From Guillardia theta CCMP2712 (taxonomy: Eukaryota > Protista > Cryptophyta), in assembly GCF_000315625.1 (NCBI RefSeq), contig NW_005434668.1, positions 623,523 through 687,522 on the forward strand: DNA of 64,000 nucleotides, given 5' to 3'. Below are positions 9,786 through 50,670 of the stretch, piece by piece. The stretch's first letter is position 1. Every line of letters starts with the position of its first letter. The translations under genes and the position numbers were made by a program. The notes under the pieces were generated by a model. It was not told where the DNA came from and made no database searches. It worked only from the letters and a program-made list of their open reading frames with translations.

Positions 9786-10366
9786 CGCGACAACGATTTT
9801 TAAATAGTGTTCTCGAACGAGCAGATCTCAGAAGAAAAGATCAAGAATAAACTATGCTTCTTCGGAACTGAAGGTAGATCTAGCAGTAACAGCTAATCCT
9901 GTTGGCAGAACAAATGAAGACACCGAGCCAAGATCCAGGAAGTTTGTTCTTGAGGGAATGGTTCTCGAGAGAATGAGTGGAAGAGCTATAGCAGAGCCTG
10001 AAGAGGATATGTAGGAATGGGGGTGGGAGCGATGGGGATGAAGGGGGTACAATGTGGTATATCCAGCGATTCAAGCCGTCGAGCGCAGTAGACCAGTGAG
10101 CAGGGCGAAGAGAGAGGGGTTGCGAAGGAGGAGGTGGTAGGGTCCGGTGGTGTCAGCAGGCTGCGGCCGGGGCCGCAAGACTAAGAGGGGTGGAGTGAGA
10201 GAGGGGTCAACATGTGCCAGGGAAAAGAGGCCCCCGTCAGGAGGGGTCCACAGAGGAGTATGAAAATTGAACGGTCTTCATTGAAGACAAGAGGGTGGGT
10301 GGTAACGAAAGGCGGAGAGCAAAAAAAAAAGGTAGACTGTACTAAACTGTACTGTGTAGGGGGGGT

Positions 10367-10466
10367 NNNNNNNNNNNNNNNNNNNNNNNNNNNNNNNNNN
10401 NNNNNNNNNNNNNNNNNNNNNNNNNNNNNNNNNNNNNNNNNNNNNNNNNNNNNNNNNNNNNNNNNN
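10367..10466. other. Assembly gap (100 N)
   Basis: Run of exactly 100 N, next to G/C homopolymers (C19 at 10507-10525). Confidence 0.99.
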
Positions 10467-10779
10467 CAGTATTACAAATGCCTTTCCTTCGAATGACGGT
10501 CAGTGTCCCCCCCCCCCCCCCCCCCATGTCCAGCACTCCCCTCTCCCATCTCCTAACCAACTGGAGGTGGGGGGGGGGGGGTACTGGAGGTAGGTCCGGC
10601 TGAAAGGAAGGTGAAAGGAAGGATGACGGAGTCCGAGCTGATGAAGGGGGTGGGGTCCGTGTCTTTTCTGTTAAGTGTACGTGGGGGGTACCGGTACCTA
10701 GCGATATAGTAGGGCCAGGAATCATGAAAAGCATTCTTTTCGCCTCTTGATGATTTAGTCCTGTCTTATCACAACGGAT

Positions 10780-11560
10780 CATCCTCATTGTGAACCTGGC
10801 AGGGCCGCCGCACAGGCCGGGCCCCGGGGCGGGCGGCGGGCCCGGCACTGTGACGGTGGCAGGCCAGGGGCTCAGCGGCTCCGACGGCAGTGGCTGAGAA
10901 CGGCCGGGTGAGTCGGACCCGACCGTGACTAGCAAGCCCGCCGGTTCCCTTCGGCGAGAACTTGATTTGCCGAAGTTGGCACTCGAATTGCCGGCGGGGC
11001 CGTCACTGTCATCATGGCCTCGGATCAGTCGCCGCCGACAGATTATGGCCCGGGTCGGGGACTCGGCAGTGCCCGGCGGGCCGGGCCCGGGGCCGGCCGA
11101 ACCGTGACGGTGCCAACCGTTGGCTTGACCTTCAAGAGTCACGAGTCAGTTGGAAAGGACTCCTCAACGGCAGCGCTGGATTTACCGTGCCCCGGGCCCG
11201 GCAAAGTTAAGAGAGAGTCAAAAATCAGTACGACTCGGGCCGTGGGCACCGTCCGGTTCAGTGCGGCCTGATCCCAGAGCCTTCCGAGCCTAGTACTGCG
11301 CACTGCAGCAGTCACTCAGTGCCATGACTGCTATGATGCCATTCATGTGCGTGCGACCGTGATCGGACAGCCTGGCAGCCTGCCCTGTGCCCCCCGGCGT
11401 CACCGCCGCCGACGCGGCCCCCGGTGACGGTGCACTCCGGCCGGGGTCACTCTTGTCCTGAGGCACGGTTGTCCTTCCGAGTTATTAGTTGCAACTTTTA
11501 GTTGTCCTCGTACCGTTATGACTTGTTGAAACTCGGATGTAACGGTCCTGTTCCAGTTGG
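10780..11560. other. GC-rich CCGG/pentamer-palindrome tract 2
   Basis: Same word set as tract 1 (ccgggcccgg, cactgtgacggt, gagtcacgagtcag, cagtcactcagtg). Flanked by GGGGT(A) words (10560-10700) and TACCCC words (11590-11700). Confidence 0.7.
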
Positions 11561-11722: not shown

Positions 11723-14700
11723 ATGGCCGGGGATCAGCGCATGTATGGCGCTGTTCCAAGGCCGACGGGCATGCGAGGCAGTAGGAGATGGTGAGTAGAG
11801 GATCACGAGGATCATTGTCTTCACCGAGTGAGGATAGAGTCTACAGGAGGTCTGACCCCTATGTCAGGTGGCAGACAAAGCTCGCGCTCATCCTCCCGAC
11901 AGCTCTCCTCGGGTTGATCGCACTGATAGCTGTCGCCATCCTGTCTCGCAGCCAACCGATTTCAGAGCTGAACTCGGACTTTGATTATGAAAACCCACTT
12001 GTTCAGTGGAAAAGTGATGAAAAGCTCAAGTAACTGCAGTAGTATTGCTCTTGTCGCCTCTGATCGTTCCTTATCAGACAACGAGCAGCAGATGCTGCTC
12101 AAAAAGGTCATTGCAGCTGCAATTGTGAACAACATTCTTCACTCAAAGTGAAAGCTGCAACCATGCTGGAGCAAGTTGGAGAGGTACCCTTTTTCGGGAG
12201 TACTCATCCATTTTTGTAACATACTTTGCGAAGAATGTCTTCTTTGGACCTTGCGCTGGTTGTCCTTGTGTTCGGAGTAATAATTTGGAGAGCATGATAG
12301 CAGCCCTAGCTAGTCAGACTGAGGTTCTATCTTCTCCTCATTGTCTCCTCTGCTCTGAATGCGACATCCTTTAGCAAGTGGAGAGTCATGAGGAAGAGCT
12401 CGACAAGCTCTACAAATCCAAGATTCCTGTGAGTACCTTGCGGTGAGGCTGCTACCTCTGCATTTACACTCGCGGCTTCACCCCAGGTGGACATCAAAAT
12501 TCGGGTCGGTCAGAAAGGAGTTCCTGGAACTGAAGGCCCGAAGGGATTCAGGGGTCCAGATGGCGTAGTCGGTGATCAGGGACCCCGTGGGCCGCCAGGG
12601 CCTAGAGGGCCGACGGGGCCGACAGGTAGAGACAATGGTCAATCCTGTTGAGAGGCTCTGACGGGCATGTCAGGACCTCCAGGGCCTCGAGGATTCAAGG
12701 GAGCGGATGGCATCACTGGCCCTCCCGGTCCGGACGGTCCGCGTGGGAAGACAGGTAAGGCTCCTTCCTGTAGCCTGCCTTGCATGACGGCTGCCTTTCA
12801 GGACCCGCAGGACCTGAGGGACCCGAAGGAATAGACGGGAAGAGGGGCCCGACGGGTCCTCCAGGGAGGGATGGTATTCCTGGAGGTTGTCTGGAGATTA
12901 AGTGCTGACCCTGCTCTTGAAGGTGTTCCTGGCCCACCAGGCTCCAACGGCCGTCAAGGTCCTCGTGGTCGCCCAGGTCCCACTCGAGGACCGCAGGGGC
13001 CTCCAGGAGAGCCTGGCCCCCAAGGTCCCATGGGAATGACCGGAAAACAAGGGCCTGAAGGCCCGAAAGGGTATGAAGGACCTCTGGGAGGCAATGGCTT
13101 GCCTGGGTCTCAGGGTCCAACGGGTCTACGTGGATTGTACGGACGAGGATGTGATGGCATAAGGCCAACAGATGCCTCACAGCTCAAGGTGCTGGACGCC
13201 TGCGGAACTTGTGGCGGTGACGAGAGCGAATGTTCGTTAAGTCGCTCAACACAGACAGCGCATGCAGTGGGTGACCCGCATTACCGCACGTTTGACGGCA
13301 AATCCTTCGATTACCAACTCAGTGGTGAGTTCATATTGGCAAGACACATGAACGACATAGAATTTCAAAACAAGCAAGTTCCGTGTCCCAACTCATGGGT
13401 TCGCTGCAACATCGGAGCAGCCGTCATCACAAAGAACTGGAACATTGTCTTTCGCAGCGACTGGAGATTGGATCAAATCATGGTTAACGGCAACATGTGG
13501 AGACAAGGATCAGACTATCGGTACGGCCATTGGAAAAGGCTCGATTGGAATCTGCGAATGCAAGTAAACGGGGGTCACTTCCTATTAGAATTTGCTGAGC
13601 TCAAAGGAGCGGAAGGAGCTGTTGTCTATGGATATCAATATGGCTGGGGTGCTCCGCTTCCCAACGGGCTCTACATGAATCTCTACTTTCAAGCTCCTTG
13701 GCGATGGAGCTCGGGTTTGAGCATGACAGGTTTATTCGGTAACTTCGACGGCAACTGGCAAGATGATTGGGACTCGATCTCTCCTTCGACTCTTTGGTGG
13801 GTAGCAGGCACGTCGCGATCAGCTTTCTCCAACTCTCAGTACCGCCTGGACTGGGGCAATCGAATCCATCGCAACCACAAGTCAGGAATCACGTCCCTTC
13901 AATCCTTGGAGAAGTCGTCGGCTTTGGCTGGGCAGGAGCAGAAATACATATCGGTGGTGAATTGGTCGCCAGAGGACGAATATACCGCTCTCAAAGAGGT
14001 GGATCATCTTACCACCAAGATGAGGAAGCGACTGTTTGACAAGATGGTGAAGGATAGAGTCATCGAGAGGTCTAAGGGCGAGAAATTGCCAACTTCGCAA
14101 CTTGCTCGCGCAGAGTTAGACATCATGCCCTATCGAGGAGAGCGACCAGATCACCTGCGTATTGAGCAGCAAATTCTCTTCAGAAAGGAGTGGAAGCTTC
14201 TCAAGCCCTCAGAGAAATCTCAGATGCTTGCAGGCCAAGTAGTGAGCAACAATGCATTCCCCATGTCCAAGATGTGTGCTGAATGCATCAGGGGATCGCA
14301 GGAGTGCAAGGACAAGGGGATCGTAGAGACACCAAAGGCTATCGGAATCACCTACCAGGATCAAGCCAAGATGAACTCTTGCCACAAGGCATGCCTCCCA
14401 TGGGTCCCCGCCGAAACTTCGAAGGTGATCTGCAAGTGTCGCATCGACTGCTCGATGGGTGTGGACGAGGCTCAGTGCACCAGCGACGCGGTTGAGAACT
14501 ACCTCTCCTCCAGGTTGGCTGCTCTCATTCCCGGGAAGGGCTCTTTGAATGAGCGATGCATTGCCTTGAAAGGCGGTATGGTCAAGGTGTACAAGGGAAA
14601 CAAACCCGGTGTTGAAATGCTGTGGAATCAGACTACCGCTCCGAACTTTGCGGTGACGTTCTGGTGGAAGCCGGACTTGCCCACTTCCTACGAGAAGAAA

Positions 14701-15246
14701 ACAAGAAAGAGTCTTCTGTACAAAGGGCCCAAGATTGAACAGAACTCAAAGTTGCCTTCTAACGTGCCGCTGCACATCGAAGTGGAGCCTCAAGGAAATG
14801 ATGTTTCCCTCATTGTCACTGTCGCTGGATACGAGAGCAAAGTGCCAGCAGAAAAGTGCTCCATGCTCACAAAGCAAGAATTTACTTTTGTTGCTGTCAC
14901 GAAGCGAGACAGCTCAATCACAGTCTGGTTGGGAGTGGACGGGAAAGAAAACTGCCAAACGATCTGCCCAGACAAGACGCTGCTCGGATGCAAGGATTCC
15001 ACATCTTGTGCGACTAAAGTTCACAACTTCAACCTTCCCAGCTCGCACTCATATGAGACGTCAGTGGACGACGAGATCACCATCGTAAGCCCGTCAGCGT
15101 CGACTGACGAGATTCCAGGGGGTTGGATGGGGAAACTGAATTACTTTGGCCTGGGAGGGTGGGATCCGACGAACAAGGTACCTCTTTGGGACAAGAAGAT
15201 CCCGGACATTGTACACATGAGACAACCGAGTGAGTGTGGAGCGTAA
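11723..15246 (+). CDS. Type II transmembrane collagen-like protein with ADAMTS-type Cys motif, VWD (GDPH) domain, Cys-rich region and LamG/ConA-like C-terminal domain
   Basis: Model begins [23 protein letters not shown]|[26 protein letters not shown] (TM), followed by several small helical exons. About 55 Gly-X-Y triplets (12508-13149), then GCDG...[42 protein letters not shown]...[13 protein letters not shown] (VWD), and [10 protein letters not shown]...[12 protein letters not shown] (LamG-like). Confidence 0.85.
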
Positions 15247-39949: not shown

Positions 39950-42900
39950 ATGACCAGTGAGGAGGGAATCGCTTTTCTCCCTGAGGTGAGGGATGCGCTT
40001 CTGCAGCGCGTGGGAACTCCTTCAGGGCTGATAAAATCTTTAAACCCCAACATGTACAGTAAAGGTTCGTTGATGCCAGATTGGACCCAATCGCGTACAG
40101 TCAACGTGGAGCATCGTCTTGGCCGGACATATCCCATGGCTGAGCTCAATGTCAAAGACTTCGTTCGCCTCCCCCGGTTGTCCACAAGGACTAGTCGCAT
40201 TCTCGACCCTTCAGATGCTGCCAGCAGATCCGGGTCGCCGCTTGATGGGGGGGCGAGGAGAGAAGCTCTGCTGCGCTTCCAAGCGAAACAGTCGGACATC
40301 AAGCCTCTGCAAGTCGCACTTGCCAACCCCTACACGCAGAAGATGAAGCGACTGAGCACGAGGAGCGAATCGAGGGAAAGTGCTCTGTCCAGCCAGAGCA
40401 CGAGGAGAGAAGAGGCGAGGGTCGAGGTTGCCATCGAGAACGAGGGAATCTTTGTGTGTGAGCTCGACCGTGAAGCAATGGACGGCTCTCTGCAGAGGTG
40501 CATCGCGGGAGAGCTCTACTCCTTCGGGGTGTCGCTCAAGTATGGTTACGGTAACGCCAAGGTGGGGACAGACATCGACCGGGAGATGATGGAGCAGTGG
40601 CTCGTGAAGCAGGGGGGGATCAACGCCTTCTTGACCGGCCCTAAAGAGATCAGCTGCACGTGTACCCACGTCGCTCAAGGGGCCTACGCGTTCACCTTCA
40701 GCTCCTCGCTTGTTGGTCAGTATCAGCTGTGGATCTTCGTGGGCAAGTCGTCCGTGGGTGGCAGCCCTTTCCCTGTCCGGATACTTCCTGGGCCAGCCAA
40801 GGGAAGGAGCTGTCACGTGACGGGCCTGGGGCTGTGGTCGGCTAAGGTTGGCATGGAAGCTTCCTTCGAGTGGGCGGCGAAAGACAGCTACGGGAACAAG
40901 GTGGAGCAGGGAGGCGATCCCTTCCTCGTGGCCGTCTTGGGCCCAGATGAGATCCCAGTTGAAGTGATCGACCACAAGGATGGAAGCTACAGGGCTGCCT
41001 ACACTCCCACCATTGCCGGGCAGTATCGCATCTCCATCACTCTACACAAGGAGCACTTGGCAGGCAGCCCGTTCCTAGTGTCTGTACACGAAGCGACGGC
41101 AGACGCGAGCATGTCGACTGTGAGCGGGGATGGTCTCGAAGATTGTCACGTGGGGAGGACAGGCATTTCCTCATCGAGGCGCTGGACAGGTACGGAAACC
41201 GAGTGATGCACGGGGACGACAAGTTCGTGGCTGACCTGGAGGGGCCGGGGGCCGAGAAAGTTCACCTCATCGACATGGACGATGGGACGTACGCGGGCAT
41301 GTACATGTGCCGATGGAGCGGAGACTTCAAGCTTCACGTGCTGCTGGACGGCACGCCGGTCGCTGAGAGTCCCTTCGACATCCACGTGCGTCCGGGCCCG
41401 ACCTACCCTCCCAACTGCGAGTGCACACTAGTGAAGCTCCCGATGACTCGCCTCCTCTCCGTTGCCGGAACTCTCTGCTCCTTCACCATCTTCGCCAAGG
41501 ACAGATTCGGAAACAGGAGGGAGGAAGGTGGCGACGACTTCGCGGTGCGATGCAGGAGCCCAACAGACACAGTGAACGCGGTGATCAAGGACAACAAGGA
41601 TGGGTCGTATGTGACGGAGTTTCGATGCTTCAAGGAAGGGGATTACTTCATCGAAGTGAAGCTGGGCAAGATAGACATCCAAGGCAGCCCCTTCGTCTTG
41701 ACTGTTGATCCTTCCAGCACTTTTGCGATGGAGTCCATGGCCGAGGGCATTGAGAATGAGTTCGGTAACGGCCTCAAGATAGCGCAAGCAGGACGACCTG
41801 TCCAGTTTCGAATCCACGCGAGAGATGAGTTCGGCAATGTGGTGCGAAAGCCGGGAGACGACTTCCAGGTGCGCATCCTCGAGGTGCAGGAAGGCATCCG
41901 AGTGCGAGCCAAGGTGATGGACAACGGGAACGGGACGTACGAGGTGACGTGGACGGGGATGATCAGAGGCGAGTACGACATCCACGTGGCCCTCAAAGAC
42001 GAGCCGATCAAGGGCAGCCCCTGGAAGGCCGTCGTTCGCACTGGCAACGCCTCCGCCGAAAAATGCACGGCGGAGGGATCAGGGCTGGGAGGAAGCAGCG
42101 CAGGAGTACCGAACTCAATCCTCGTGGAGTCAAACGATCACTTTGGCAACATCGTGACCAACGGGGGGGCGAAGGTGGAAGGAGTTCTCGTGTCCCTCGA
42201 TGGATCCCTCAGCATCGCCTGCGAGGTTGCTGATCACGAGGACGGCACTTACACTGTGACCTATGCCGCCAAGCGCAGCTCCGAGTACTTCCTAGCTGTG
42301 CGGGTCGACGGGGAGCACATCCATGAAAGCCCCTTCCTCATCTTCGTGGACCACACAGTCACCGACGCGTCTCAGTGCATGGCAGAAGGAAAGCACGAGC
42401 ATGGCGATGGCTTGAAATATTGCTCGGTGGGCGATGAAACTGGCTTTCAGATTTTTGCATTCGACACGTTCGGAAACAGGTGCACAGTTGGAGGAGACAG
42501 CTTCTATGCTGTTCTCAAAGGAGAGAAGGACGTCAATGTTGAGATCCTCGACCATCAGGACGGGCACTACACCTGCTCCTACACCGCCTTGTGGTCAGGC
42601 CAATACCAGTTGCATGTGACATTGAACGGGCAGGACATCCAGGGAAGCCCGTGGGGGATCGAGGCGATAGGAGCTGAGATCCACCCGCCCTCATGCTACA
42701 TCCATGGCCCGGGGATCTACGCGACGGTCGCAGGCAAGGAGGCAGACTTGCACGTGCAGGCCAAGGACAAGTACGAGAACATCCGCCAGGAGGAGGACCC
42801 GATCGAAGTTCACATCTCCGGACCTGAGAAGGTCACGATCCTACGAAGATACCTGGGTGAGGGCCAGTACGACTTCTTCTGGACCGCCAACTCCACTGGG

Positions 42901-43764
42901 GTGTATGAGGTAGACATCAGCTGCCATGGTGAGTCTCTTGGTACGGCTCCTTACTCGGTTAACGTCGGGCCCGGGCCCATCCACCCGCTCAACTGCATCG
43001 CCACCGGCGACGGGCTGCACTCGGGGATGGCAGGGATACCCAACATCTTTGTGATCAACTCCAAGGACATGTTCGGCAACGCGAGGACGCATGGGGGAGA
43101 CAAATACTCTCTCTCCATCTCAGGCCCCACAGTGTGCGAGGCCAAAGTTCGGGACCAGGAGAACGGCAGGTACACAGTGACATGGTCGACGCTGATCAAG
43201 GGGTCCTACTGGATTCAAATCACTCTCAACGGAGAGGAAATCTCCGGAAGCCCTTACCTCTGCGAGATTTCTCCCTCCTACGTGGACGTCGAGGCCTCGC
43301 AGGCGTCAGGAATGGGCTTGCTGTCCGTCGCCACCTTCAAGGACTCCTCCTTCACCATCCACAGCTACGACAAGTACGGCAACCATCTGGACAAGGGCGG
43401 CGACAGCTGGGAAGTGTCGATCGTCGGGGTCGAGGTCCCTGAGGTTTCGATCCAAGACAACGACGACGGGACGTACCTGGTGAGGTATCAGTCGACGGTC
43501 AAGGGTGTCCTGCAAGTATATGTGGGAATGAAGGGGAGAGAGCTGGTGGACAGCCCGTTCGAGGTGTACTCGGACTCCAAGGTGAGGAGGAAGCTGGCGC
43601 AGGAGAAGGCTGCCAAGCTTGCATCCAAGCAATCGGAGGCAGAGAAGCGAAGAGACTCTTCGGTCGCCATCATGAATGAACAGGTGAAGAAAGTTGGGAA
43701 GAAGAAGGAGAGTGACGAGGAAGAGTCGACACTGCCGACAAGGGGGATGAAGATTCTTGGTTAA
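39950..43764 (+). CDS. Filamin/ABP-120-type Ig-repeat protein (10 repeats), split by a 1-bp frameshift at about 41152
   Basis: Repeated G.GL..G...F.I...D.YGN...GGD.F...D..DG.Y...G.Y.L.V...I.GSPF units across ORFs 39950-41206 and 41143-43764. Adding one G to the G4 run at 41152-41155 restores GLEDCHVGEDRHFLIEALDRYGN. Confidence 0.85.
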
Positions 43765-44031
43765 TCGTTGCAGCCATGAAGACGGCGGTCCTCTTTTCCC
43801 GGAACGCCATTTATTCCGGCGGATGCTTATCCCTAAATCGTAAGAAATCTGTAAACGCAAAAAGAGACTGCGAAAGAGACTCCAGTGGCTGTCATTCCGG
43901 GTTGAAACATCATTCAACGACCAGCCTTCGAGGCTCGCATTTCTAAAGTCTCTGCAAGATCCTTGAGAGGACAACACAACAATAAGAATACGCCCAAGAA
44001 TTCATCTACAATGTGAACAACAACTGGAAAT

Positions 44032-45364
44032 CTACAAGGGCAGACGCGTTAACTGCACAAGGGTCAGTGAGCAGAGGAGGAGCGCAGTGATTCCTTCACC
44101 TGTAGGCTCATCTTCAATCGAAGCCGTTCTCTTAGCGTACCACCCAATCGCTACTCCAGCAGCAATGGCAAGAGTTCCGTACGTGTAGGCCGCTGCCTCA
44201 AGCCCGAACAGATGCACAGACGATCCCAGCACAGCAGGACCGAGGAAGGCGCCGAGGTTGTGAGAAACGAAGGCAAGCTGCACCAGAGTCAGAAAGGGAG
44301 GGAGCGAGGACTGACCTCACCTGCTGCAGAGCTGGTGAGCGAGCATCTCCCTGCCCTACGCTGTCCACCATCCTCAAGAACACACCCGTGTAGACAACAC
44401 TCGCGCTGCATCCCAACAGCATGACCGGAACAACCTCAACCGCCAAGGACTCCGGGCTGAAGAGCGCGAGGAACGCGACACCGTTGCAAGCTAATCCAGC
44501 ACCCACCAACATATTTCTGTTGATCTTCTCCGAGACTAGAGCCGCCACGTTGGCCACGAAGATGAAGGCGATGGCCGCGATCATCATGAGGCCTCCCAGA
44601 GCTGAAGCAGAGGTGGCAAAGGCGACATTGAGATGGAGAGGAAGGATGACTTCACTGAACGCAACGGTGGAAGAGATGAGCAGGAGAGACACGAGCGAGA
44701 GAAGAGTCTGCGGGTCCTTCACGTGCGGGGTCAACGGCTCCATCTTGGTGAACTCAGCATCGTTGTCCCTTAGGTACATCATGACCAAAGAGAAGACGCC
44801 AGCGAGAGTCAGACCAGCGAGCAAGCAAGGAATAAAAGCTCCATCCGAGGACAATGAGCCGCCGATGAGAGGGCCCATCGTCAGGCCGAACCCGCCGCAG
44901 AAGTAGACCATGACAAACCTGTTGCCGCGCTCGGACGAGGGATAGAGCGAGTCTAACATAGCGATGCTCCCTGATTGCAAGAAAGTGCTTCCAACTCCTC
45001 CGATCGTTCGACTCAGAAATAGAATGGGGAACGAGGAGCCAGCCATGAACATGATGCAGTTGAAGAAAAACACCACCTGCGCTGTCGCGATCATCATCCA
45101 GCACTTCACATGCCCAGCGAGGAAGATCGTAAGAGGAGTTCCCATTGCAGCTCCAAAGCTGTAGCTAGCGAACAGAAGCGCAACCTCAGCAGTAGAAAAG
45201 TAGGCTCCTGTTATCAAGTGGTAGGAGGGAACAAGAGGGATAAGGTATGTGTACAAAAACCCTGAAAGAAAAATCGTGACACAGATGACTATGAAGGCGA
45301 CCTTCCTCTCCTTATCCTCCACCTGCATTATATCGATTAGTCTCCAAAGCATCATTCGCATCAT
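44032..45364 (-). CDS. MFS transporter (12-TM, SLC18/DHA1-like)
   Basis: About 12 hydrophobic segments, including IVICVTIFLSGFLYTYLIPLVPSY, LFLSRTIGGVG, YPSSERG and GLTMGPLIGGSL. One intron near 44281-44320; 3' end may extend to about 43914. Confidence 0.85.
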
Positions 45365-45974
45365 GAAATCACATTCGCGTTGAATGCTCCAGCAGCAAGG
45401 TTTCCTGCCCTCAACAGGAAAGAAGCCTCCGCCTTCTGCTCACTGTCTGGTTCCATCTTGGCACGAGTATAGAAGGCAGAGGGGGATCAAGGGAATGAAT
45501 GTAGCCCTAACGCCACTCCTGCAGGAACAATCAAATTCATTTCAATACAGAAAACTTAGAGGATAACAACATCTCTTTGCGTTTTCATGTCAGGGATTAC
45601 AACAACAAGATAAAATTTGTCATGTGCAATATCACCGAAACACCTGCATTTAGATTACCGCAATCTTGTTGATTCTGGCATCATTGATTTCGAACAATGT
45701 CTCTTTGTATGCACACAGATATCAAGAAGAAAAGCATCATGCCATGCTTCGATTCCTCCCTTGTTCCCTCCAGTGTAGTTCGATTGCCTTCTGAACTCTC
45801 AATTACCACCCTCGTCCTTCCCTTCAAACTAGTGCACTTGCTACTAAAAGTAGTGTGTGGCACTCTTCTCTTACACGGTCTGCCGTCGCTAGCCTTCTCC
45901 TCTCTCTTCCTCTCTCTTCTCCTCGCCTTCTATTCCTCCCCTTGTTGCCCTCCATTGACACGACAGCGTCTCGA

Positions 45975-46480
45975 CCTCGGTACCAAAAGAGGATCACCCT
46001 ACCCCCACCCTCACATTTGCCACCCCACTTCAGAAAAAGTCCCACCCCTCGATTATCTATGAGTACCCGGTACCTTTACCACCCTCGTGAACTCCTTACT
46101 ACCCCACGAAAAGGGGATACTCCCTTGCACACCCCCTTTGAGATCACCCCTACCCTATCCTTTGATCAACACCCAACCCCTTTTGCGTAGTACAAATGTT
46201 GGAGGAACGAGCTGAACAAATGTGAAATTTTACCTCTTGATTTGAATATTTTATTGTTATCTTGAATAATTTTTTTCGAATTGACGCAACCATATTCGGA
46301 TTTAGAACCCACCCAACTGATAGCTTTCATTTTGATTGTGACGTGGGTGGGGTGGGGACTACTGATTTGCAAGGGTCTAGAATTGAAGGATTTGAAGGGG
46401 GTAGTTGTCAGTCATACAAAGGGTAGGGGTAGTGGCAAAGGGGAGGATCACCTAAAGGTAGGGGTGAGGAATTTCCCATA
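45975..46480. promoter_or_regulatory. TACCCC then GGGGTA tract
   Basis: C-rich taccc/acccc words (45975-46180), then G-rich ggggta words (46340-46470), directly before CCGG tract 3. Confidence 0.4.
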
Positions 46481-46519
46481 ATTTTCTTCCTGATTTAGAA
46501 ATAGTGGTCATGTGTGGGG

Positions 46520-46757
46520 ATGTGGCTCCCGGTCAACACACGGTCAGTGATCGGACGGCCGCGCGGCCCGGCCGCCCGGCGCCGGGCGACCCGGCCGCCC
46601 GGCGCCGGGCGACCCGGCCGCCGCGTCGGACAGACGGTCGCGCCCGCCGGAACGGGAAACTTCCCGGAGTCCCGGCCGCGCACGCGCGTCCACGAGACCT
46701 TCGGCGGCCGCCGAACCAGCTGAACGCCCGCTGTCAGTACCGTACTGACAGCGGGCG
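46520..46757. other. GC-rich CCGG tract 3 ending in perfect palindromes
   Basis: A 23-bp tandem duplication (cccggccgcccggcgccgggcga), palindrome ttcggcggccgccgaa (46700-46715), and a 16-bp-arm inverted repeat (46725-46757). Confidence 0.75.
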
Positions 46758-48040
46758 GCCCAAGCGCGAAGCCGCGCAGACAAGCAGCCTAAGGGTCAAG
46801 CAATCAAGCAACAAGCAGCAGGAGCATGCAGGAGGGGTAGGAGGCGAACAAACGGAGATGCTCGCAAGAGGGCAAGCGAGCGCCTTCAGTGATGCTCCCA
46901 TCAAAGTAGTCGCGACTCGCACGTCCCTCGATTGCATCGAAGAGAGCCTGGCGGTCGAGGGAGTTGAAGGCGTTCTTTGCATCCAAACTCACCAGCACTG
47001 TGGGGTGGGCAACATCCTCATCATCACCGCGAGCGTGAAGGGGCAGGAGCGCTGACGCGGTTTGCGAGAACTTCAGGCAGTCGTCACGAGTCTCGATCGA
47101 GTCCGAACTGAATCGCTCGAGGGTGAGACGAGAGGACACACAACGAAGATTTACTGGCAGAAGGTAAAAAGTGCCTGGAGTGTCGGATACAAAACAAAGC
47201 ATGAACAAGCTAAACCTGCCTGCACACAGCGCACAGCGAGAAGCTGCACAAACACACACAAAACACAAGCCCGAAAGAACCAGCACTGCTGAGGAAGTGC
47301 TGGTCAAGAAATGTGCGAATCCGGGGAATAAATCTGCCTCCTCGACGAATGGCTGACAGGGCAGGAATAAGAAGATCCGGCATCCGGCCAAGAAGGACCC
47401 CTTGGAGGATATGTTTGCAGTAGAGCTTCAAAGCTGTACTTCGTTCATAATGCTGGAGCGATCCTCTACCGTCGTGTGAGGGCTCCTGGCCTTCCCGCAT
47501 CGCTATGCTCAGACCACTCAAGGGCGCTCTTGTCTGGTGCGAGGCGCATGACGCCCTTGCGGGCGCAAGCACTTCTCGAGCCAGAGGACAGCTCCTCCTC
47601 GGACTTTGTCGAGTCGCCCGAGGAGGAGACTTCGCCGGAGGTCTCCGACTCCGATGGGGGAAACATCCAGAGTGGAGCCGACGATCGGCGCGGGGCTAGC
47701 GAAGCGTCTCCGTCCCTCACTGTGACGTCGGGTGCCTCCGGAGAGCTCGACACCACTGGGGTGCTTGCTGCTGGTCCGAGCTCGCCTGCTTCCTCCCGGC
47801 ATCGGTCGGGTCACGCCGGTCCTTGGGCATTGCTGCGGCGTCGCCGCCGTCACGGGCGGCTACCACTGACTCGGCTACCGCTGACTCGGAGGCTAGCGAG
47901 GAGGCCAGCAGCAGCAACAGCAGCAACAGCAGCAACTGAGGTCGATTTACTGGCAACAGCAGCAACAGCAGTAACCGCGTCAGCAGCAGCAGCAGAAGCA
48001 GCAGCAGCAGCAACGCCAGCGTCAGCAGCATCGTCCGCGT

Positions 48041-48076
<36 letters not shown>

Positions 48077-50670
48077 ATTTACTGGCAGAAGGTAAAAAGT
48101 CGCAGCAGCAGCAGCAGCAGCAACACCAGCCGCGGCACTGCGGCAACCACCACAGCAGCGACCACAACCGCGCGGGCCGAGGGAGCAGCGGCAGTCCGGC
48201 AGAAGGTAAAAAGTGCCTCAAGCAAAACAAAGCAGGAACAAGCTAAACCTCCTGGCACACAGGAATCTGAGCCTGCTCCTCCGCCGCGACCTACGCTGTC
48301 CCTCGATTCATCAGTTCACTGCGGGTGACCTTCATCGGGCGGTACGGACACTACTGAGCTCCGGCATCTACAAGGCTGAATCTTTCGCTGATCTTCTTGC
48401 TGAAGCACAAGAGAAGTTTCCTGCTGGTGCGTCGCCTGCCTTTTATTCCTCCTGCATGCTCCTGCTGCTTGTTGCTTGATTGCCTGACCCTTAGGCTGCT
48501 TGTCTGCGCGGCTTCGCGCTTGGGCTGGCGCTGCCGCGTCTGGGTGCCAGTGTGATTGTGCAGCTTCTCGCTGTGGACTGTGTGCCTGCCGGTTCAGCTT
48601 GTTCCTGCTTTGTTTTGCTTGAGGCACTTTTTACCTTCTGCCAGTAAATCCTATCAGTGCCTTTGGAAGTGCTTCCGCGGCTCATCTCACCCAGCAAGCG
48701 CTTGCAGTACGGTACTGCAGGTGGATTTGACTGACATCCTCGACACCACTAGCCTGATCCAGGCGATCAAGCGCTACAGCTCCTTTTCAGAGCGTCATCG
48801 ATACAGTGGGGGATCCTCGTTCTCGACGGCAGGTACCCTCCCATGAGGGCCGCAAGATGAAGGGCGATATCCACATCCCTGGAATCCGCGATCGAGGGTC
48901 TGAGCAGTACGAGGGCTTGATGGCGGACGTGACGTTGGTCCACCCTTACATTGGCAGCTCTGCCGACCTGACCAAGTGGGGGGAGGTCAACCTCGCTGTG
49001 GACTGTGTGCCTGCCGGTTCAGCTTGTTCCTGCTTTGTTTTGCTTGAGGCACTTTTACCTTCTGCCAGTAAATCCTATACCTCGACGCCCTCCATGTTGC
49101 AGCGTCTGACAAGATTCGCAAACATCGCGCTGCATATGCTATGACTACTCCTGTGCCAGGAGGTTTAGCTTGATCCTGCTTTATTTTGCTTGAGGCACTT
49201 TTTACCTTCTGCCAGTAAATCCTATACTCCTCCACGTGCCTCCGGAGAGCTCGACACAACTGGGGTGCTTGCTGCTGGTCCGAGCTCGCCTGCTTCCTCC
49301 CCGGCATCGGTCGGGTCACGCCGGTCCTTGGGCATTGCTGCGGCGTCGCCGCCGTCACGGGCGGCTACCGCTGACTCGGCTGGATACCGCTGACTCGGAG
49401 GCTAGGCTAGCGAGGAGGACTACCTCGAGCGGTACCGTGTTCCTGTGTCCAGCCTCCCTCCGTCCGCTGCCCCTGGCGGACCCCCGGGCAACGCCGGCTC
49501 CTTGTCGGCGGCTGCCCTTTCTCCGTCCGCGGCCGCCCGCTTTGTGGCGGCAGCGGACGTCTCGACTGACAGTGGTCAGTCGGCTGCCTCCGGGTATCGC
49601 GTCTAAGGGATTTTCTTCCTCCTGCATGCTCCTGCTGCTTGTTGCTTGATTGCTTGACCCTTAGGCTGCTTGTCTGCGCGGCTTCGCGCTTGGGCTGGCG
49701 CTTCCGCGTCTGGGTGCCAGCAGTGCTGGTTCTTTTCGGGCTTGTGTTTTGTGTGTGATTGTGCAGCTTCTCGCTGTGGACTGTGTGCCTGCCGGTTCAG
49801 CTTGTTCCTGCTTTGTTTTGCTTGAGGCACTTTTTACCTTCTGCCAGTAAATCCACTATTCGCTTTGCGGGGACCGATGACCAAGGGTGGAGGATTCGGC
49901 AACACCTGTCACCCCTTTCGAGTCATCCTGCCGCGAGACATTGCAGAGTTGGGTACGGGAAGCAGGAAGGCGGGAAGGTGCTCAAAGAGCAGAACAAGGG
50001 TCTGATAGCTGGACGAGGAAGGATCATATCGATCGATGAATTGCAGCAAAGACACAAGACAAGTCAGCCAAAGCTCTGCAGTCTCACCAAAGAGGTGAGA
50101 CGCAGTGACATGAGGACGAAAGCGCTCATGAATATAGAGGAAGACTCGGAGGTTGGACATCAACCACTTCTGCCAGTAAATCCTGCCTGGTTTACTGCAG
50201 CAGCCGCCGACAAGGTTTTTTCAAGCTGGTATTGTAATATCTGAGCGATCTGAGCCGTCGACATTCCTCCAAGAGATAAGAGCTGGGATAGGCTCCCTCC
50301 CTCGCGGCCTCAAGGTCCTCGCTTGGCTCGAAGCTTGAAGGACCGGTCATGTGCAATCTTGACCGTACCTCGGTGGCTCGAAACAAGCAAGACCCTCATG
50401 CATAGAGCATACAACAACAAAAGCGGGGCCACACGTTTTACCTTATGCGAGTGGAATGTTTACTCGCAGAAGGTAAAAAGTGCCTCAAGCAAAACAAAGC
50501 AGGGGAAAGCTAAACCTGCATGCACACAGCGCACAGCGAGAAGCGGCACAAACACACACAGAAAAACAAGACCAAAAGTAAACATCAAAAGGCCGCACGT
50601 AACTGTGACAGCAACAAACGCGGCGCAAACACACAAAGCACCAGACCAAAAGTAACCAGCACTGCCACCG
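46758..50670. mobile_element. Mosaic of fragmented retrotransposon sequence (CRE-like non-LTR RT and restriction-like endonuclease pieces) with about 10 copies of a shared end module
   Basis: Minus-strand RT motif PTVLVSLDAKNAFNSLDRQALFDAI (DAKNAFNS at 46960-46983). Plus-strand RLE-like RKMKGDIHIPG...LMADVTLVHP (about 48850-48945). Repeated module ending ...gcactttttaccttctgccagtaaatc. Internal duplication of 47732-47905 at 49236-49418. Confidence 0.75.
47905..48130. repeat. (CAG/CAA)n microsatellite embedded in the retroelement mosaic
   Basis: Directly visible; interrupted by end-module fragments at about 47944 and 48073-48100. Confidence 0.9.

Follow-up and report, generated by a model that had tools for sequence, protein, structure and literature searches.

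Whether a cryptophyte alga builds, within a single polypeptide, a mosaic resembling the extracellular matrix (ECM) of animals, and what such a protein would do, is the question raised by a gene of Guillardia theta CCMP2712 that lies at positions 11788-15246 (+ strand) of a 64,000-nucleotide stretch of contig NW_005434668.1 (assembly GCF_000315625.1, positions 623,523 to 687,522). This whole stretch is referred to here as the window, and all nucleotide coordinates are given with respect to it. A first-pass annotation, made from the sequence alone, had described the locus as an animal-ECM-like combination of a transmembrane (TM) collagen, an ADAMTS Cys motif, a VWD domain (type D of von Willebrand factor) with a GDPH site and a LamG-like domain. 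The transcript, Pfam matches and structure models examined here agree on this architecture, with a predicted type II anchor followed by a collagen stalk, a GDPH-containing VWD and a LamG-type head, and lead us to read the protein as a new domain architecture made from known parts rather than as animal-derived ECM.

The working gene model takes the ATG at 11788 as its start codon. Its exon chain was built from the listing of open reading frames (ORFs) and from reading the sequence for GT..AG borders, and was checked against relatives by tblastn. Searches were run exon by exon and with a stored transcript ORF, P0260, whose numbering is used for all residues; genome-wide searches covered an assembly of 87.1 Mb in 669 contigs (G000), in which the window corresponds to C6:623523-687522. 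Eight GT..AG exons, separated by introns of 47-58 nt, span 11788-15246 and code for a protein of 1035 aa, the stop codon being read at 15244..15246. P0260, a 1035-aa ORF from an MMETSP transcript, reproduces all eight exon translations in order and with zero mismatches, and the four single residues that fall between exon translations correspond to split codons. Because P0260 matches every exon exactly, the exons encoding the TM segment and the collagen are joined by splicing to the exon encoding the VWD, as the proposed mosaic requires, and the locus is a real, expressed gene whose spliced transcript matches the model. P0260 was found in the 90 % cluster of P0121, the protein annotated at the locus, which comprises only the last 222 aa.

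The earlier proposal of a start at 11723 fared less well. The piece spanning 11723..11790 (+) joins the main frame only if a 38-nt segment with GT..AG borders (11791-11828) is spliced out, and P0260 translates that segment as coding sequence, so that the upstream start has no transcript support. The piece does carry a YG motif, and four relatives also have YG near their N-terminus; on the strength of this shared motif, the ATG at 11723 may be a start codon. An assembly gap, seen as a run of N at 10342-11142, lies on the upstream side within about 1 kb and leaves the promoter region incomplete.

The N-terminal part of the protein has the layout of a membrane anchor. Exon 1 (11788..12029, residues 1-80) encodes a 31-aa tail, a TM helix (11881-11943) and the start of the ectodomain. 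Residues 1-31 form a basic tail, with 7 basic and 3 acidic residues in the N-terminal flank, and residues 32-52 are the sole strongly hydrophobic segment of the protein (Kyte-Doolittle maximum of 2.8). No N-terminal signal peptide was identified in P0260. The basic flank, taken together with the missing signal peptide, points to a type II topology, with the N-terminus inside and a single signal-anchor TM segment, in keeping with the short cytoplasmic tail and single TM segment noticed in the first pass. Inspection of four relatives whose N-termini are complete showed the same succession of a basic cluster and a hydrophobic, TM-like segment. The anchor is followed by a neck (residues 53-171) presenting two conserved Cys motifs: HCSCNC (12109-12126), located in exon 2 (12078..12183, residues 82-116) together with a conserved ATMLEQVGE in a segment that aligns to relatives, and PCAGCPC (12249-12269), located in exon 3 (12234..12323, residues 117-146). 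A Pro/Gly-poor spacer then begins in exon 3 and is completed in exon 4 (12375..12428, residues 147-164), ahead of the collagen; its length is exactly 35 residues in all 12 relatives tested. Pfam returned no match on the neck, and no R-x-x-R furin-type site occurs between residues 53 and 171.

The collagen domain spans residues 172-334 (163 aa) and contains 54 Gly-X-Y triplets and one off-register residue, Arg283, in the context GPT-R-GPQ, which substantiates the estimate of about 55 triplets with a single one-residue interruption. It is distributed over four exons. Exon 5 (12487..12625, residues 165-210) holds the PVDI junction and the first 13 triplets, the collagen starting at 12508; exon 6 (12674..12754, 81 nt) and exon 7 (12802..12873, 72 nt) hold 9 and 8 triplets, respectively; and the first part of exon 8 (12923..13140) holds the last 24, including the extra Arg283 (12985-12987). 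Against a cut-off of 27.2 bits, the Pfam Collagen family (PF01391) was detected on exons 5 and 8 with 31.8 and 31.9 bits (E of 1.3e-7 and 1.1e-7), and exon 6 taken alone (30 aa) scored slightly under it (24.8 bits, E 1.9e-5). The three introns within the collagen region are all in phase 1, each splitting a Gly codon, so that exons 6 and 7 have phase-1 introns on both sides; both exons are whole multiples of 9 nt. Pro makes up 24 % of the domain, occupying 28 X and 11 Y positions, and at least 15 loci for prolyl 4-hydroxylase (P4H)-type 2-oxoglutarate (2OG) oxygenases in the G. theta genome make prolyl hydroxylation possible.

Comparison among relatives reveals that the dimensions of this domain are more tightly kept than its sequence. 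Of 12 full-length relatives, 11 have a collagen of exactly 163 residues, and in 11 the sole imperfection, either one inserted residue or the form G-x-x-A-P-P-[YF]-G, falls at offset 108-111 of these 163, in domains that are only 52-60 % identical position by position. Such constancy of length and of the weak point is in keeping with a ruler-like spacer that has a single, putative hinge. The overall plan is shared with the membrane-associated collagens with interrupted triple helices (XIII, XXIII and XXV), collagen XVII and the scavenger receptors SR-A and MARCO, all of which are of type II orientation and pass from a short tail and one TM segment through a juxtamembrane neck and a collagen stalk to a C-terminal globular part. 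The membrane collagens, however, comprise several collagenous and non-collagenous segments and a furin-type shedding site, whereas the G. theta protein has one continuous 163-aa domain with a single one-residue imperfection and a neck devoid of R-x-x-R.

The remainder of exon 8 (12923..15246), which extends from the end of the collagen through the LamG-type domain to the stop codon, opens with a four-Cys motif, GCDG..CGxCGGDxSxC (13147..13233, residues 337-365), whose four Cys are kept in 26 of the 26 relatives covering it. Among PDB sequences, its roughly 30 residues match the C-terminal end of the Cys-rich domains of ADAMTS5 (E 0.037) and ADAMTS13 (E 1), and in both alignments all four Cys coincide. 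This likeness covers only the last quarter or so of the ADAMTS domain; Pfam reported no family on P0260:325-385, and the protein lacks TSR, protease and any ADAMTS Pfam family. The ADAMTS assignment of the first-pass annotation thus holds for the motif and its Cys spacing but does not extend to an ADAMTS domain. A closer context is offered by a protein of 4226 aa, whose cluster includes a protein of the sponge Corticium candelabrum and in which the core D-x-C-G-x-C-x-G-D-x-S-x-C precedes most of the aligned VWD repeats; the same core also precedes the VWD in a secreted sister family described below.

The VWD domain (13243..13989) scored 32 bits with Pfam VWD (PF00094; cut-off 22.9), and its sequence matches in the PDB were FCGBP (1e-16) and MUC5B. 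Residues 338-737 were modelled with AlphaFold2, numbering this piece from residue 338, which places GDPH at G41, D42, P43 and H44. The core of the modelled VWD (piece residues 70-180) attained a predicted local distance difference test (pLDDT) of 85-97. Foldseek matched the model to MUC2, VWF, MUC5AC, FCGBP and RGMB (best E 6e-10), and a second structure aligner (VIA) superposed the model range 32-280 on the MUC2 D2 VWD with Z 16.6 and a root-mean-square deviation (rmsd) of 2.3 Å over 168 residues. All matches of this aligner down to Z 9.9 were VWD-containing proteins, the next falling at Z 3.2. The agreement between Pfam, Foldseek and the Z of 16.6, and the sharp drop to about Z 3 for chains other than VWD, indicate that the predicted VWD domain is complete. 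With the VWDs of FCGBP, MUC2, MUC5AC and the RGMs it shares the full fold (Z 12-17), the position of GDPH between the first two strands, and the Asp, His and downstream Gln; unlike them, it is accompanied by no C8, TIL or E module detectable by Pfam.

The GDPH site itself (residues 378-381, 13270-13281), which had been picked out in the first pass, is present in 27 of the 28 sequences that cover it in the alignment, and piece residues G41, D42, P43, H44 and Q56, the latter 14 residues after the Asp, are each kept in at least 90 % of members. In FCGBP D10, cleavage is abolished by a change of the Asp or the His and reduced by a change of the Gln 14 residues downstream (PMC10880436). Since the residues that FCGBP D10 requires are conserved, the site is probably competent for cleavage, with a predicted self-cut between Asp379 and Pro380 (13275 and 13276). 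What would keep the two fragments together appears to differ from the known cases. In FCGBP the fragments are joined by a disulfide, C472-C611, of which the first Cys lies five residues before the Asp (PMC8267560). In the G. theta family the equivalent position is Ala in 25 of 26 members and never Cys in any member, and where GLCGN has its Cys, Phe, Tyr, Trp or Leu occurs in 30 of 30. From GDPH to piece residue 375, no Cys is shared by all members apart from Cys79 and Cys86, which lie seven residues apart and would form the one conserved internal disulfide. With both bridging positions occupied by residues other than Cys, we infer that the cleaved head is held to the stalk only by strand complementation through the first VWD beta-strand.

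Downstream of the VWD, a middle region (13990..14274; residues ~618-712, about 100 residues) is strongly conserved, with many invariant residues, and mostly helical in the model; it has no match to a Pfam family. It is followed by a Cys-rich helical module (14275..14508) with 10 Cys, 9 of which are kept in at least 31 of 33 sequences, in line with the Cys-rich segment reported earlier. No C8 or TIL was found by Pfam in 27 members at E up to 10; by this sequence criterion, with no search aimed at its fold alone, the module is not a C8. A language-model atlas search with the middle and Cys-rich regions reached a best score of 0.76, below the useful level.

A model of the last 334 residues attained high confidence (pLDDT 90.8, predicted template modelling score of 0.88) and depicts the ten-Cys helical module, with high-confidence helices in model residues 8-90, and then a LamG/pentraxin-type (concanavalin A-like) jelly roll (14509..15243). 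A fold search independent of Foldseek aligned 150-180 residues at rmsd 2.6-3.5 Å and placed model residues ~90-334 closest, with Z 14-15, to pentraxins (PTX3), the LamG-like domain of PAPP-A, the PTX-like domain of ADGRG4 and the jelly-roll subdomain found in receptor-binding domains of clostridia, followed by sialic-acid-binding CBM40 (Z 12.6-13.6), laminin LG (Z 11.5-13.2), and TSPN and collagen IX NC4 (Z of about 12). Structure matches in the ESM Atlas were Laminin_G_3 clusters, including bacterial and giant-virus proteins. Pfam itself does not see the domain: there was no match on the C-terminal third, Laminin_G_3 was found in 0 of 27 family members at E up to 10, and no Pfam family other than Collagen and VWD matched the protein (27 members for the C-terminal part). 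A profile comparison with hhalign nevertheless linked the head unit to the C-terminal unit of the sister family (A4) with 95.8 % probability (E 7e-9, 204 columns), and in that family Pfam detects Laminin_G_3 directly (P0130 with 42.9 bits and P0142 with 37.2 bits against a cut-off of 27.6). The jelly-roll model and the profile link to a Pfam-positive family support the assignment of the C-terminal domain as a divergent Laminin_G_3/pentraxin-type jelly roll, and with it the LamG-like fold originally suggested.

A word-based search recovered about 40 members of the family. All named ones are cryptophytes, from the plastid-bearing genera Hanusia, Rhodomonas, Hemiselmis, Guillardia and Baffinella, and the rest are transcript-sized contigs; databases label them as VWFD domain-containing or hypothetical proteins. 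No plastid-lacking cryptomonad appears among the named matches, which is weak evidence of absence. The best match outside G. theta is from Hanusia phi (82 %). The corresponding ORF, P0001, has in its residues 1-40 a stretch resembling a translated intron before the last exon, so that the transcript looks intron-retaining or 5'-truncated and its length of 814 aa would understate the protein. An exhaustive search of 1.84 billion cluster representatives returned 231 proteins at E up to 0.001. In the list of the 150 best, matches extending past query residue 300 were known family members or short high-identity fragments, and all others covered only the four-Cys motif and the VWD part. G. theta itself has two copies, the window gene and a paralogue on C173 (43 % identity), which corresponds to the annotated GUITHDRAFT_147829 (P0020), with exon matches up to 100 % (C173 ~43800-48800). 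The P0020 model reads the collagen exons in the wrong frame, yielding a charged stretch devoid of Gly-X-Y where relatives have collagen. An apparent third copy on C51 was discarded as a probable assembly artefact: it is 504 bp long, 100 % identical to window 14470-14973 (L002:1507-2010) and abuts a 100-N gap.

Among the partial matches, a second family was recognized in plankton metatranscriptomes (P0130, P0142, P0144, P0041, P0129, P0241), none of which was found in the G. theta genome. Its members present, in order, a signal peptide, a long coiled coil, the Cys motif, a GDPH VWD, a small Cys module and Laminin_G_3. The CGxCGGDxSxC motif, the VWD (32-40 % identical to the window family), the small Cys module and the LamG-type domain are thus common to both families. 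The sister family, in contrast, has a signal peptide instead of a TM anchor and a coiled coil instead of a long collagen, with P0241 combining a coiled coil and short collagen runs; it also keeps the canonical Cys pair around GDPH that the window family lacks. The middle region was not seen in it, its matches to the window protein ending at about residue 265. We take it from this distribution that the cassette of Cys motif, VWD and LamG-type domain predates the collagen stalk. As chemically different stalks have come to be mounted on the same cassette, the stalk is read as a putative oligomerizing spacer.

How far the protein deserves to be called animal-ECM-like can be assessed against this background. 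The resemblance holds as regards layout but is not in itself a sign of kinship. Collagen is common in this genome, where dozens of contigs carry a total of at least 137 collagen-repeat matches that pass the Pfam cut-off, and collagen-type genes are a large class in G. theta; Laminin_G_3, to which the head is linked, also occurs in the protist sister family and in bacterial and giant-virus proteins; and the VWD lacks the C8, TIL and bridging disulfide of animal D assemblies. Another instance of the collagen class is an inverted, near-identical gene pair on C23 (L014:789-2231, - strand, and L014:3898-5418, + strand), in which a collagen domain is followed by three repeats of a Cys-containing domain and Pfam finds only Collagen. 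None of the domains of the window protein is new in itself, and animals have type II receptors with collagen stalks. Full-text literature searches, however, found no paper on the family or on its combination of parts: a TM anchor, a collagen of invariant length, an ADAMTS-like four-Cys motif, a GDPH VWD without the bridging disulfide, an orphan helical region and a divergent LamG_3.

These observations are best explained by a protein residing at the cell surface or in the secretory pathway of the cryptophyte. More specifically, we give a probability of about one half to a type II anchored homotrimer in which a collagen stalk of 46 nm carries three self-cleaved VWD-LamG heads that bind an extracellular ligand, the protein serving as a surface tether or receptor. 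Under this explanation, three chains would zip into a collagen triple helix of ~46 nm (163 residues x 0.286 nm per residue), which would act as a spacer of fixed length with one conserved flexible point and keep the three heads away from the membrane. The VWD would cut itself at Asp379/Pro380 early in secretion, as in FCGBP, MUC2 and the RGMs, and in the absence of the bridging disulfide each head would be retained on the stalk only via the first beta-strand of the VWD sandwich. The LamG-type head would have its ligand outside the cell, with a glycan or matrix polymer the most likely candidate, and the protein would tether the plasma membrane to the surface coat (the surface periplast layer) or act as a receptor for an external partner. 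Full-text literature searches found no paper naming proteins of that layer. Several observations weigh against this picture. The heptad pattern of the neck spacer has the same best phase in 12 of 12 relatives but is not significant versus shuffles in any single sequence, and the helical neck of the first-pass annotation is accordingly something we infer. The middle region is modelled with pLDDT of only 36-67 and the four-Cys motif with 31-41 (piece residues 1-33). Because both are poorly modelled, an unusual, non-canonical long-range disulfide between the four upstream Cys and the ten downstream Cys is conceivable. LamG-type folds, moreover, are also protein-binding or purely structural, and the fold alone is no proof of glycan binding.

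Two other uses of the same architecture at the cell surface are, in our estimate, unlikely. The anchor could be only a biosynthetic intermediate, the ectodomain or the cleaved head being shed as a building block that self-assembles into the surface periplast layer (fibrous or made of plates), scales or flagellar hairs. A head that lacks the bridging disulfide could indeed leave its stalk once cleaved, and the sister family is secreted via a signal peptide instead of being anchored; the neck, however, offers no furin-type site for shedding, the basic cluster and TM-like segment recur in the four relatives with complete N-termini, and a stalk whose length does not vary is more readily understood as a spacer fixed at one end than as the subunit of a polymer. 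With about the same low likelihood, the protein could be an analogue of collectins and scavenger receptors, engaged in pattern recognition of bacteria, prey or viruses instead of linking the cell to its own coat. Class A scavenger receptors have a type II TM segment, a spacer, a collagen and a C-terminal recognition domain, a layout matched here, and the folds closest to the head include pentraxins and the sialic-acid-binding CBM40. The heads of scavenger receptors and collectins are SRCR or C-type lectin domains, though, neither of which Pfam finds in the G. theta protein, and its VWD and 125-aa conserved helical region have no counterpart in such receptors. An elaboration that we consider somewhat more doubtful is a two-chain device, in which the head would be pulled off or released from the collagen stalk, or the C-terminal Asp-anhydride of the stalk would become ester-linked to a periplast glycan. 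SEA and GAIN domains, with their non-covalent autoproteolytic junctions, provide a model for a releasable head. For the ester link the model is ITIH3, likened here by mechanism alone, which is described as undergoing a GDPH-type Asp-Pro cleavage whose new C-terminal Asp is ester-linked to a glycan (PMC8267560) and would illustrate how the stalk fragment might become covalently coupled to a matrix polysaccharide.

We rate locations or origins away from the cell surface lower still. Topology alone is as compatible with the lumen of an internal organelle as with the surface, and the collagen could tether contents to a vesicle membrane, for instance in the ejectisome vesicle, much as extrusive organelles of cnidarians are described as using mini-collagens (PMC2289959); we regard this as improbable, and the named matches include no plastid-lacking cryptomonad, although this is weak evidence. 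The idea of a fibre gene of viral origin, or of a piece of an integrated viral element, comes to mind given that the fibres of cryptophyte polinton-like viruses combine collagen repeats and Laminin_G_3 (PMC12220804), sharing a collagen stalk and a concanavalin A-like terminal domain with the window protein. Long ORFs without introns (1700-2000 aa) in the same genome resemble fibre genes from integrated viruses, polinton-like or other: L012:1853-7837, with Pfam Collagen, PA14, GLEYA and Laminin_G_3, and L011:4625-9802 and L013:1823-6916, with Laminin_G_3 and Gly_rich_2 at loci of collagen-repeat matches. Such viral fibres are intronless, reside in viral elements and often carry an endosialidase chaperone, whereas the window gene is interrupted by introns, lies among cellular neighbours and encodes a TM anchor and a VWD. 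Its exon chain includes eight introns with GT..AG borders and has orthologues in five cryptophyte genera; no relative was found in IMG/VR viral contigs; and hhalign found no link between the head and the LamG_3 domains of the long ORFs of this type. The ten neighbouring ORFs encode ankyrin, TPR, WD40, HEAT, kinase-like or filamin-repeat proteins, or proteins with no Pfam match, and none of the ten is a viral gene. A viral origin of the present gene is thereby largely refuted, and we consider it very improbable. Elsewhere in the window, two adjacent long ORFs at 39950-43764 (+) with many filamin/ABP280 repeats and invasin-D3/bacterial Ig-like matches possibly belong to a large surface or cytoskeletal repeat protein.

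In practical terms, the reference models of both G. theta copies, the 222-aa fragment at the window locus and the C173 paralogue, need correction. For the biology of the group, the family is a concrete candidate, conserved across the named plastid-bearing genera, for a membrane-to-coat tether or a surface receptor. It illustrates how a plan otherwise seen in animals, consisting of an anchor, a collagen stalk and a recognition head, can be built outside them from widely available modules. A GDPH VWD without the disulfide that bridges its fragments also provides a natural test bearing on the purpose of VWD autoproteolysis. If the two-chain device were true, an ITIH-like ester link would fasten the plasma membrane to the cell coat by a covalent bond, and either form of the mechanism would be one undescribed for collagens or algal cell surfaces and assembled independently of animals.

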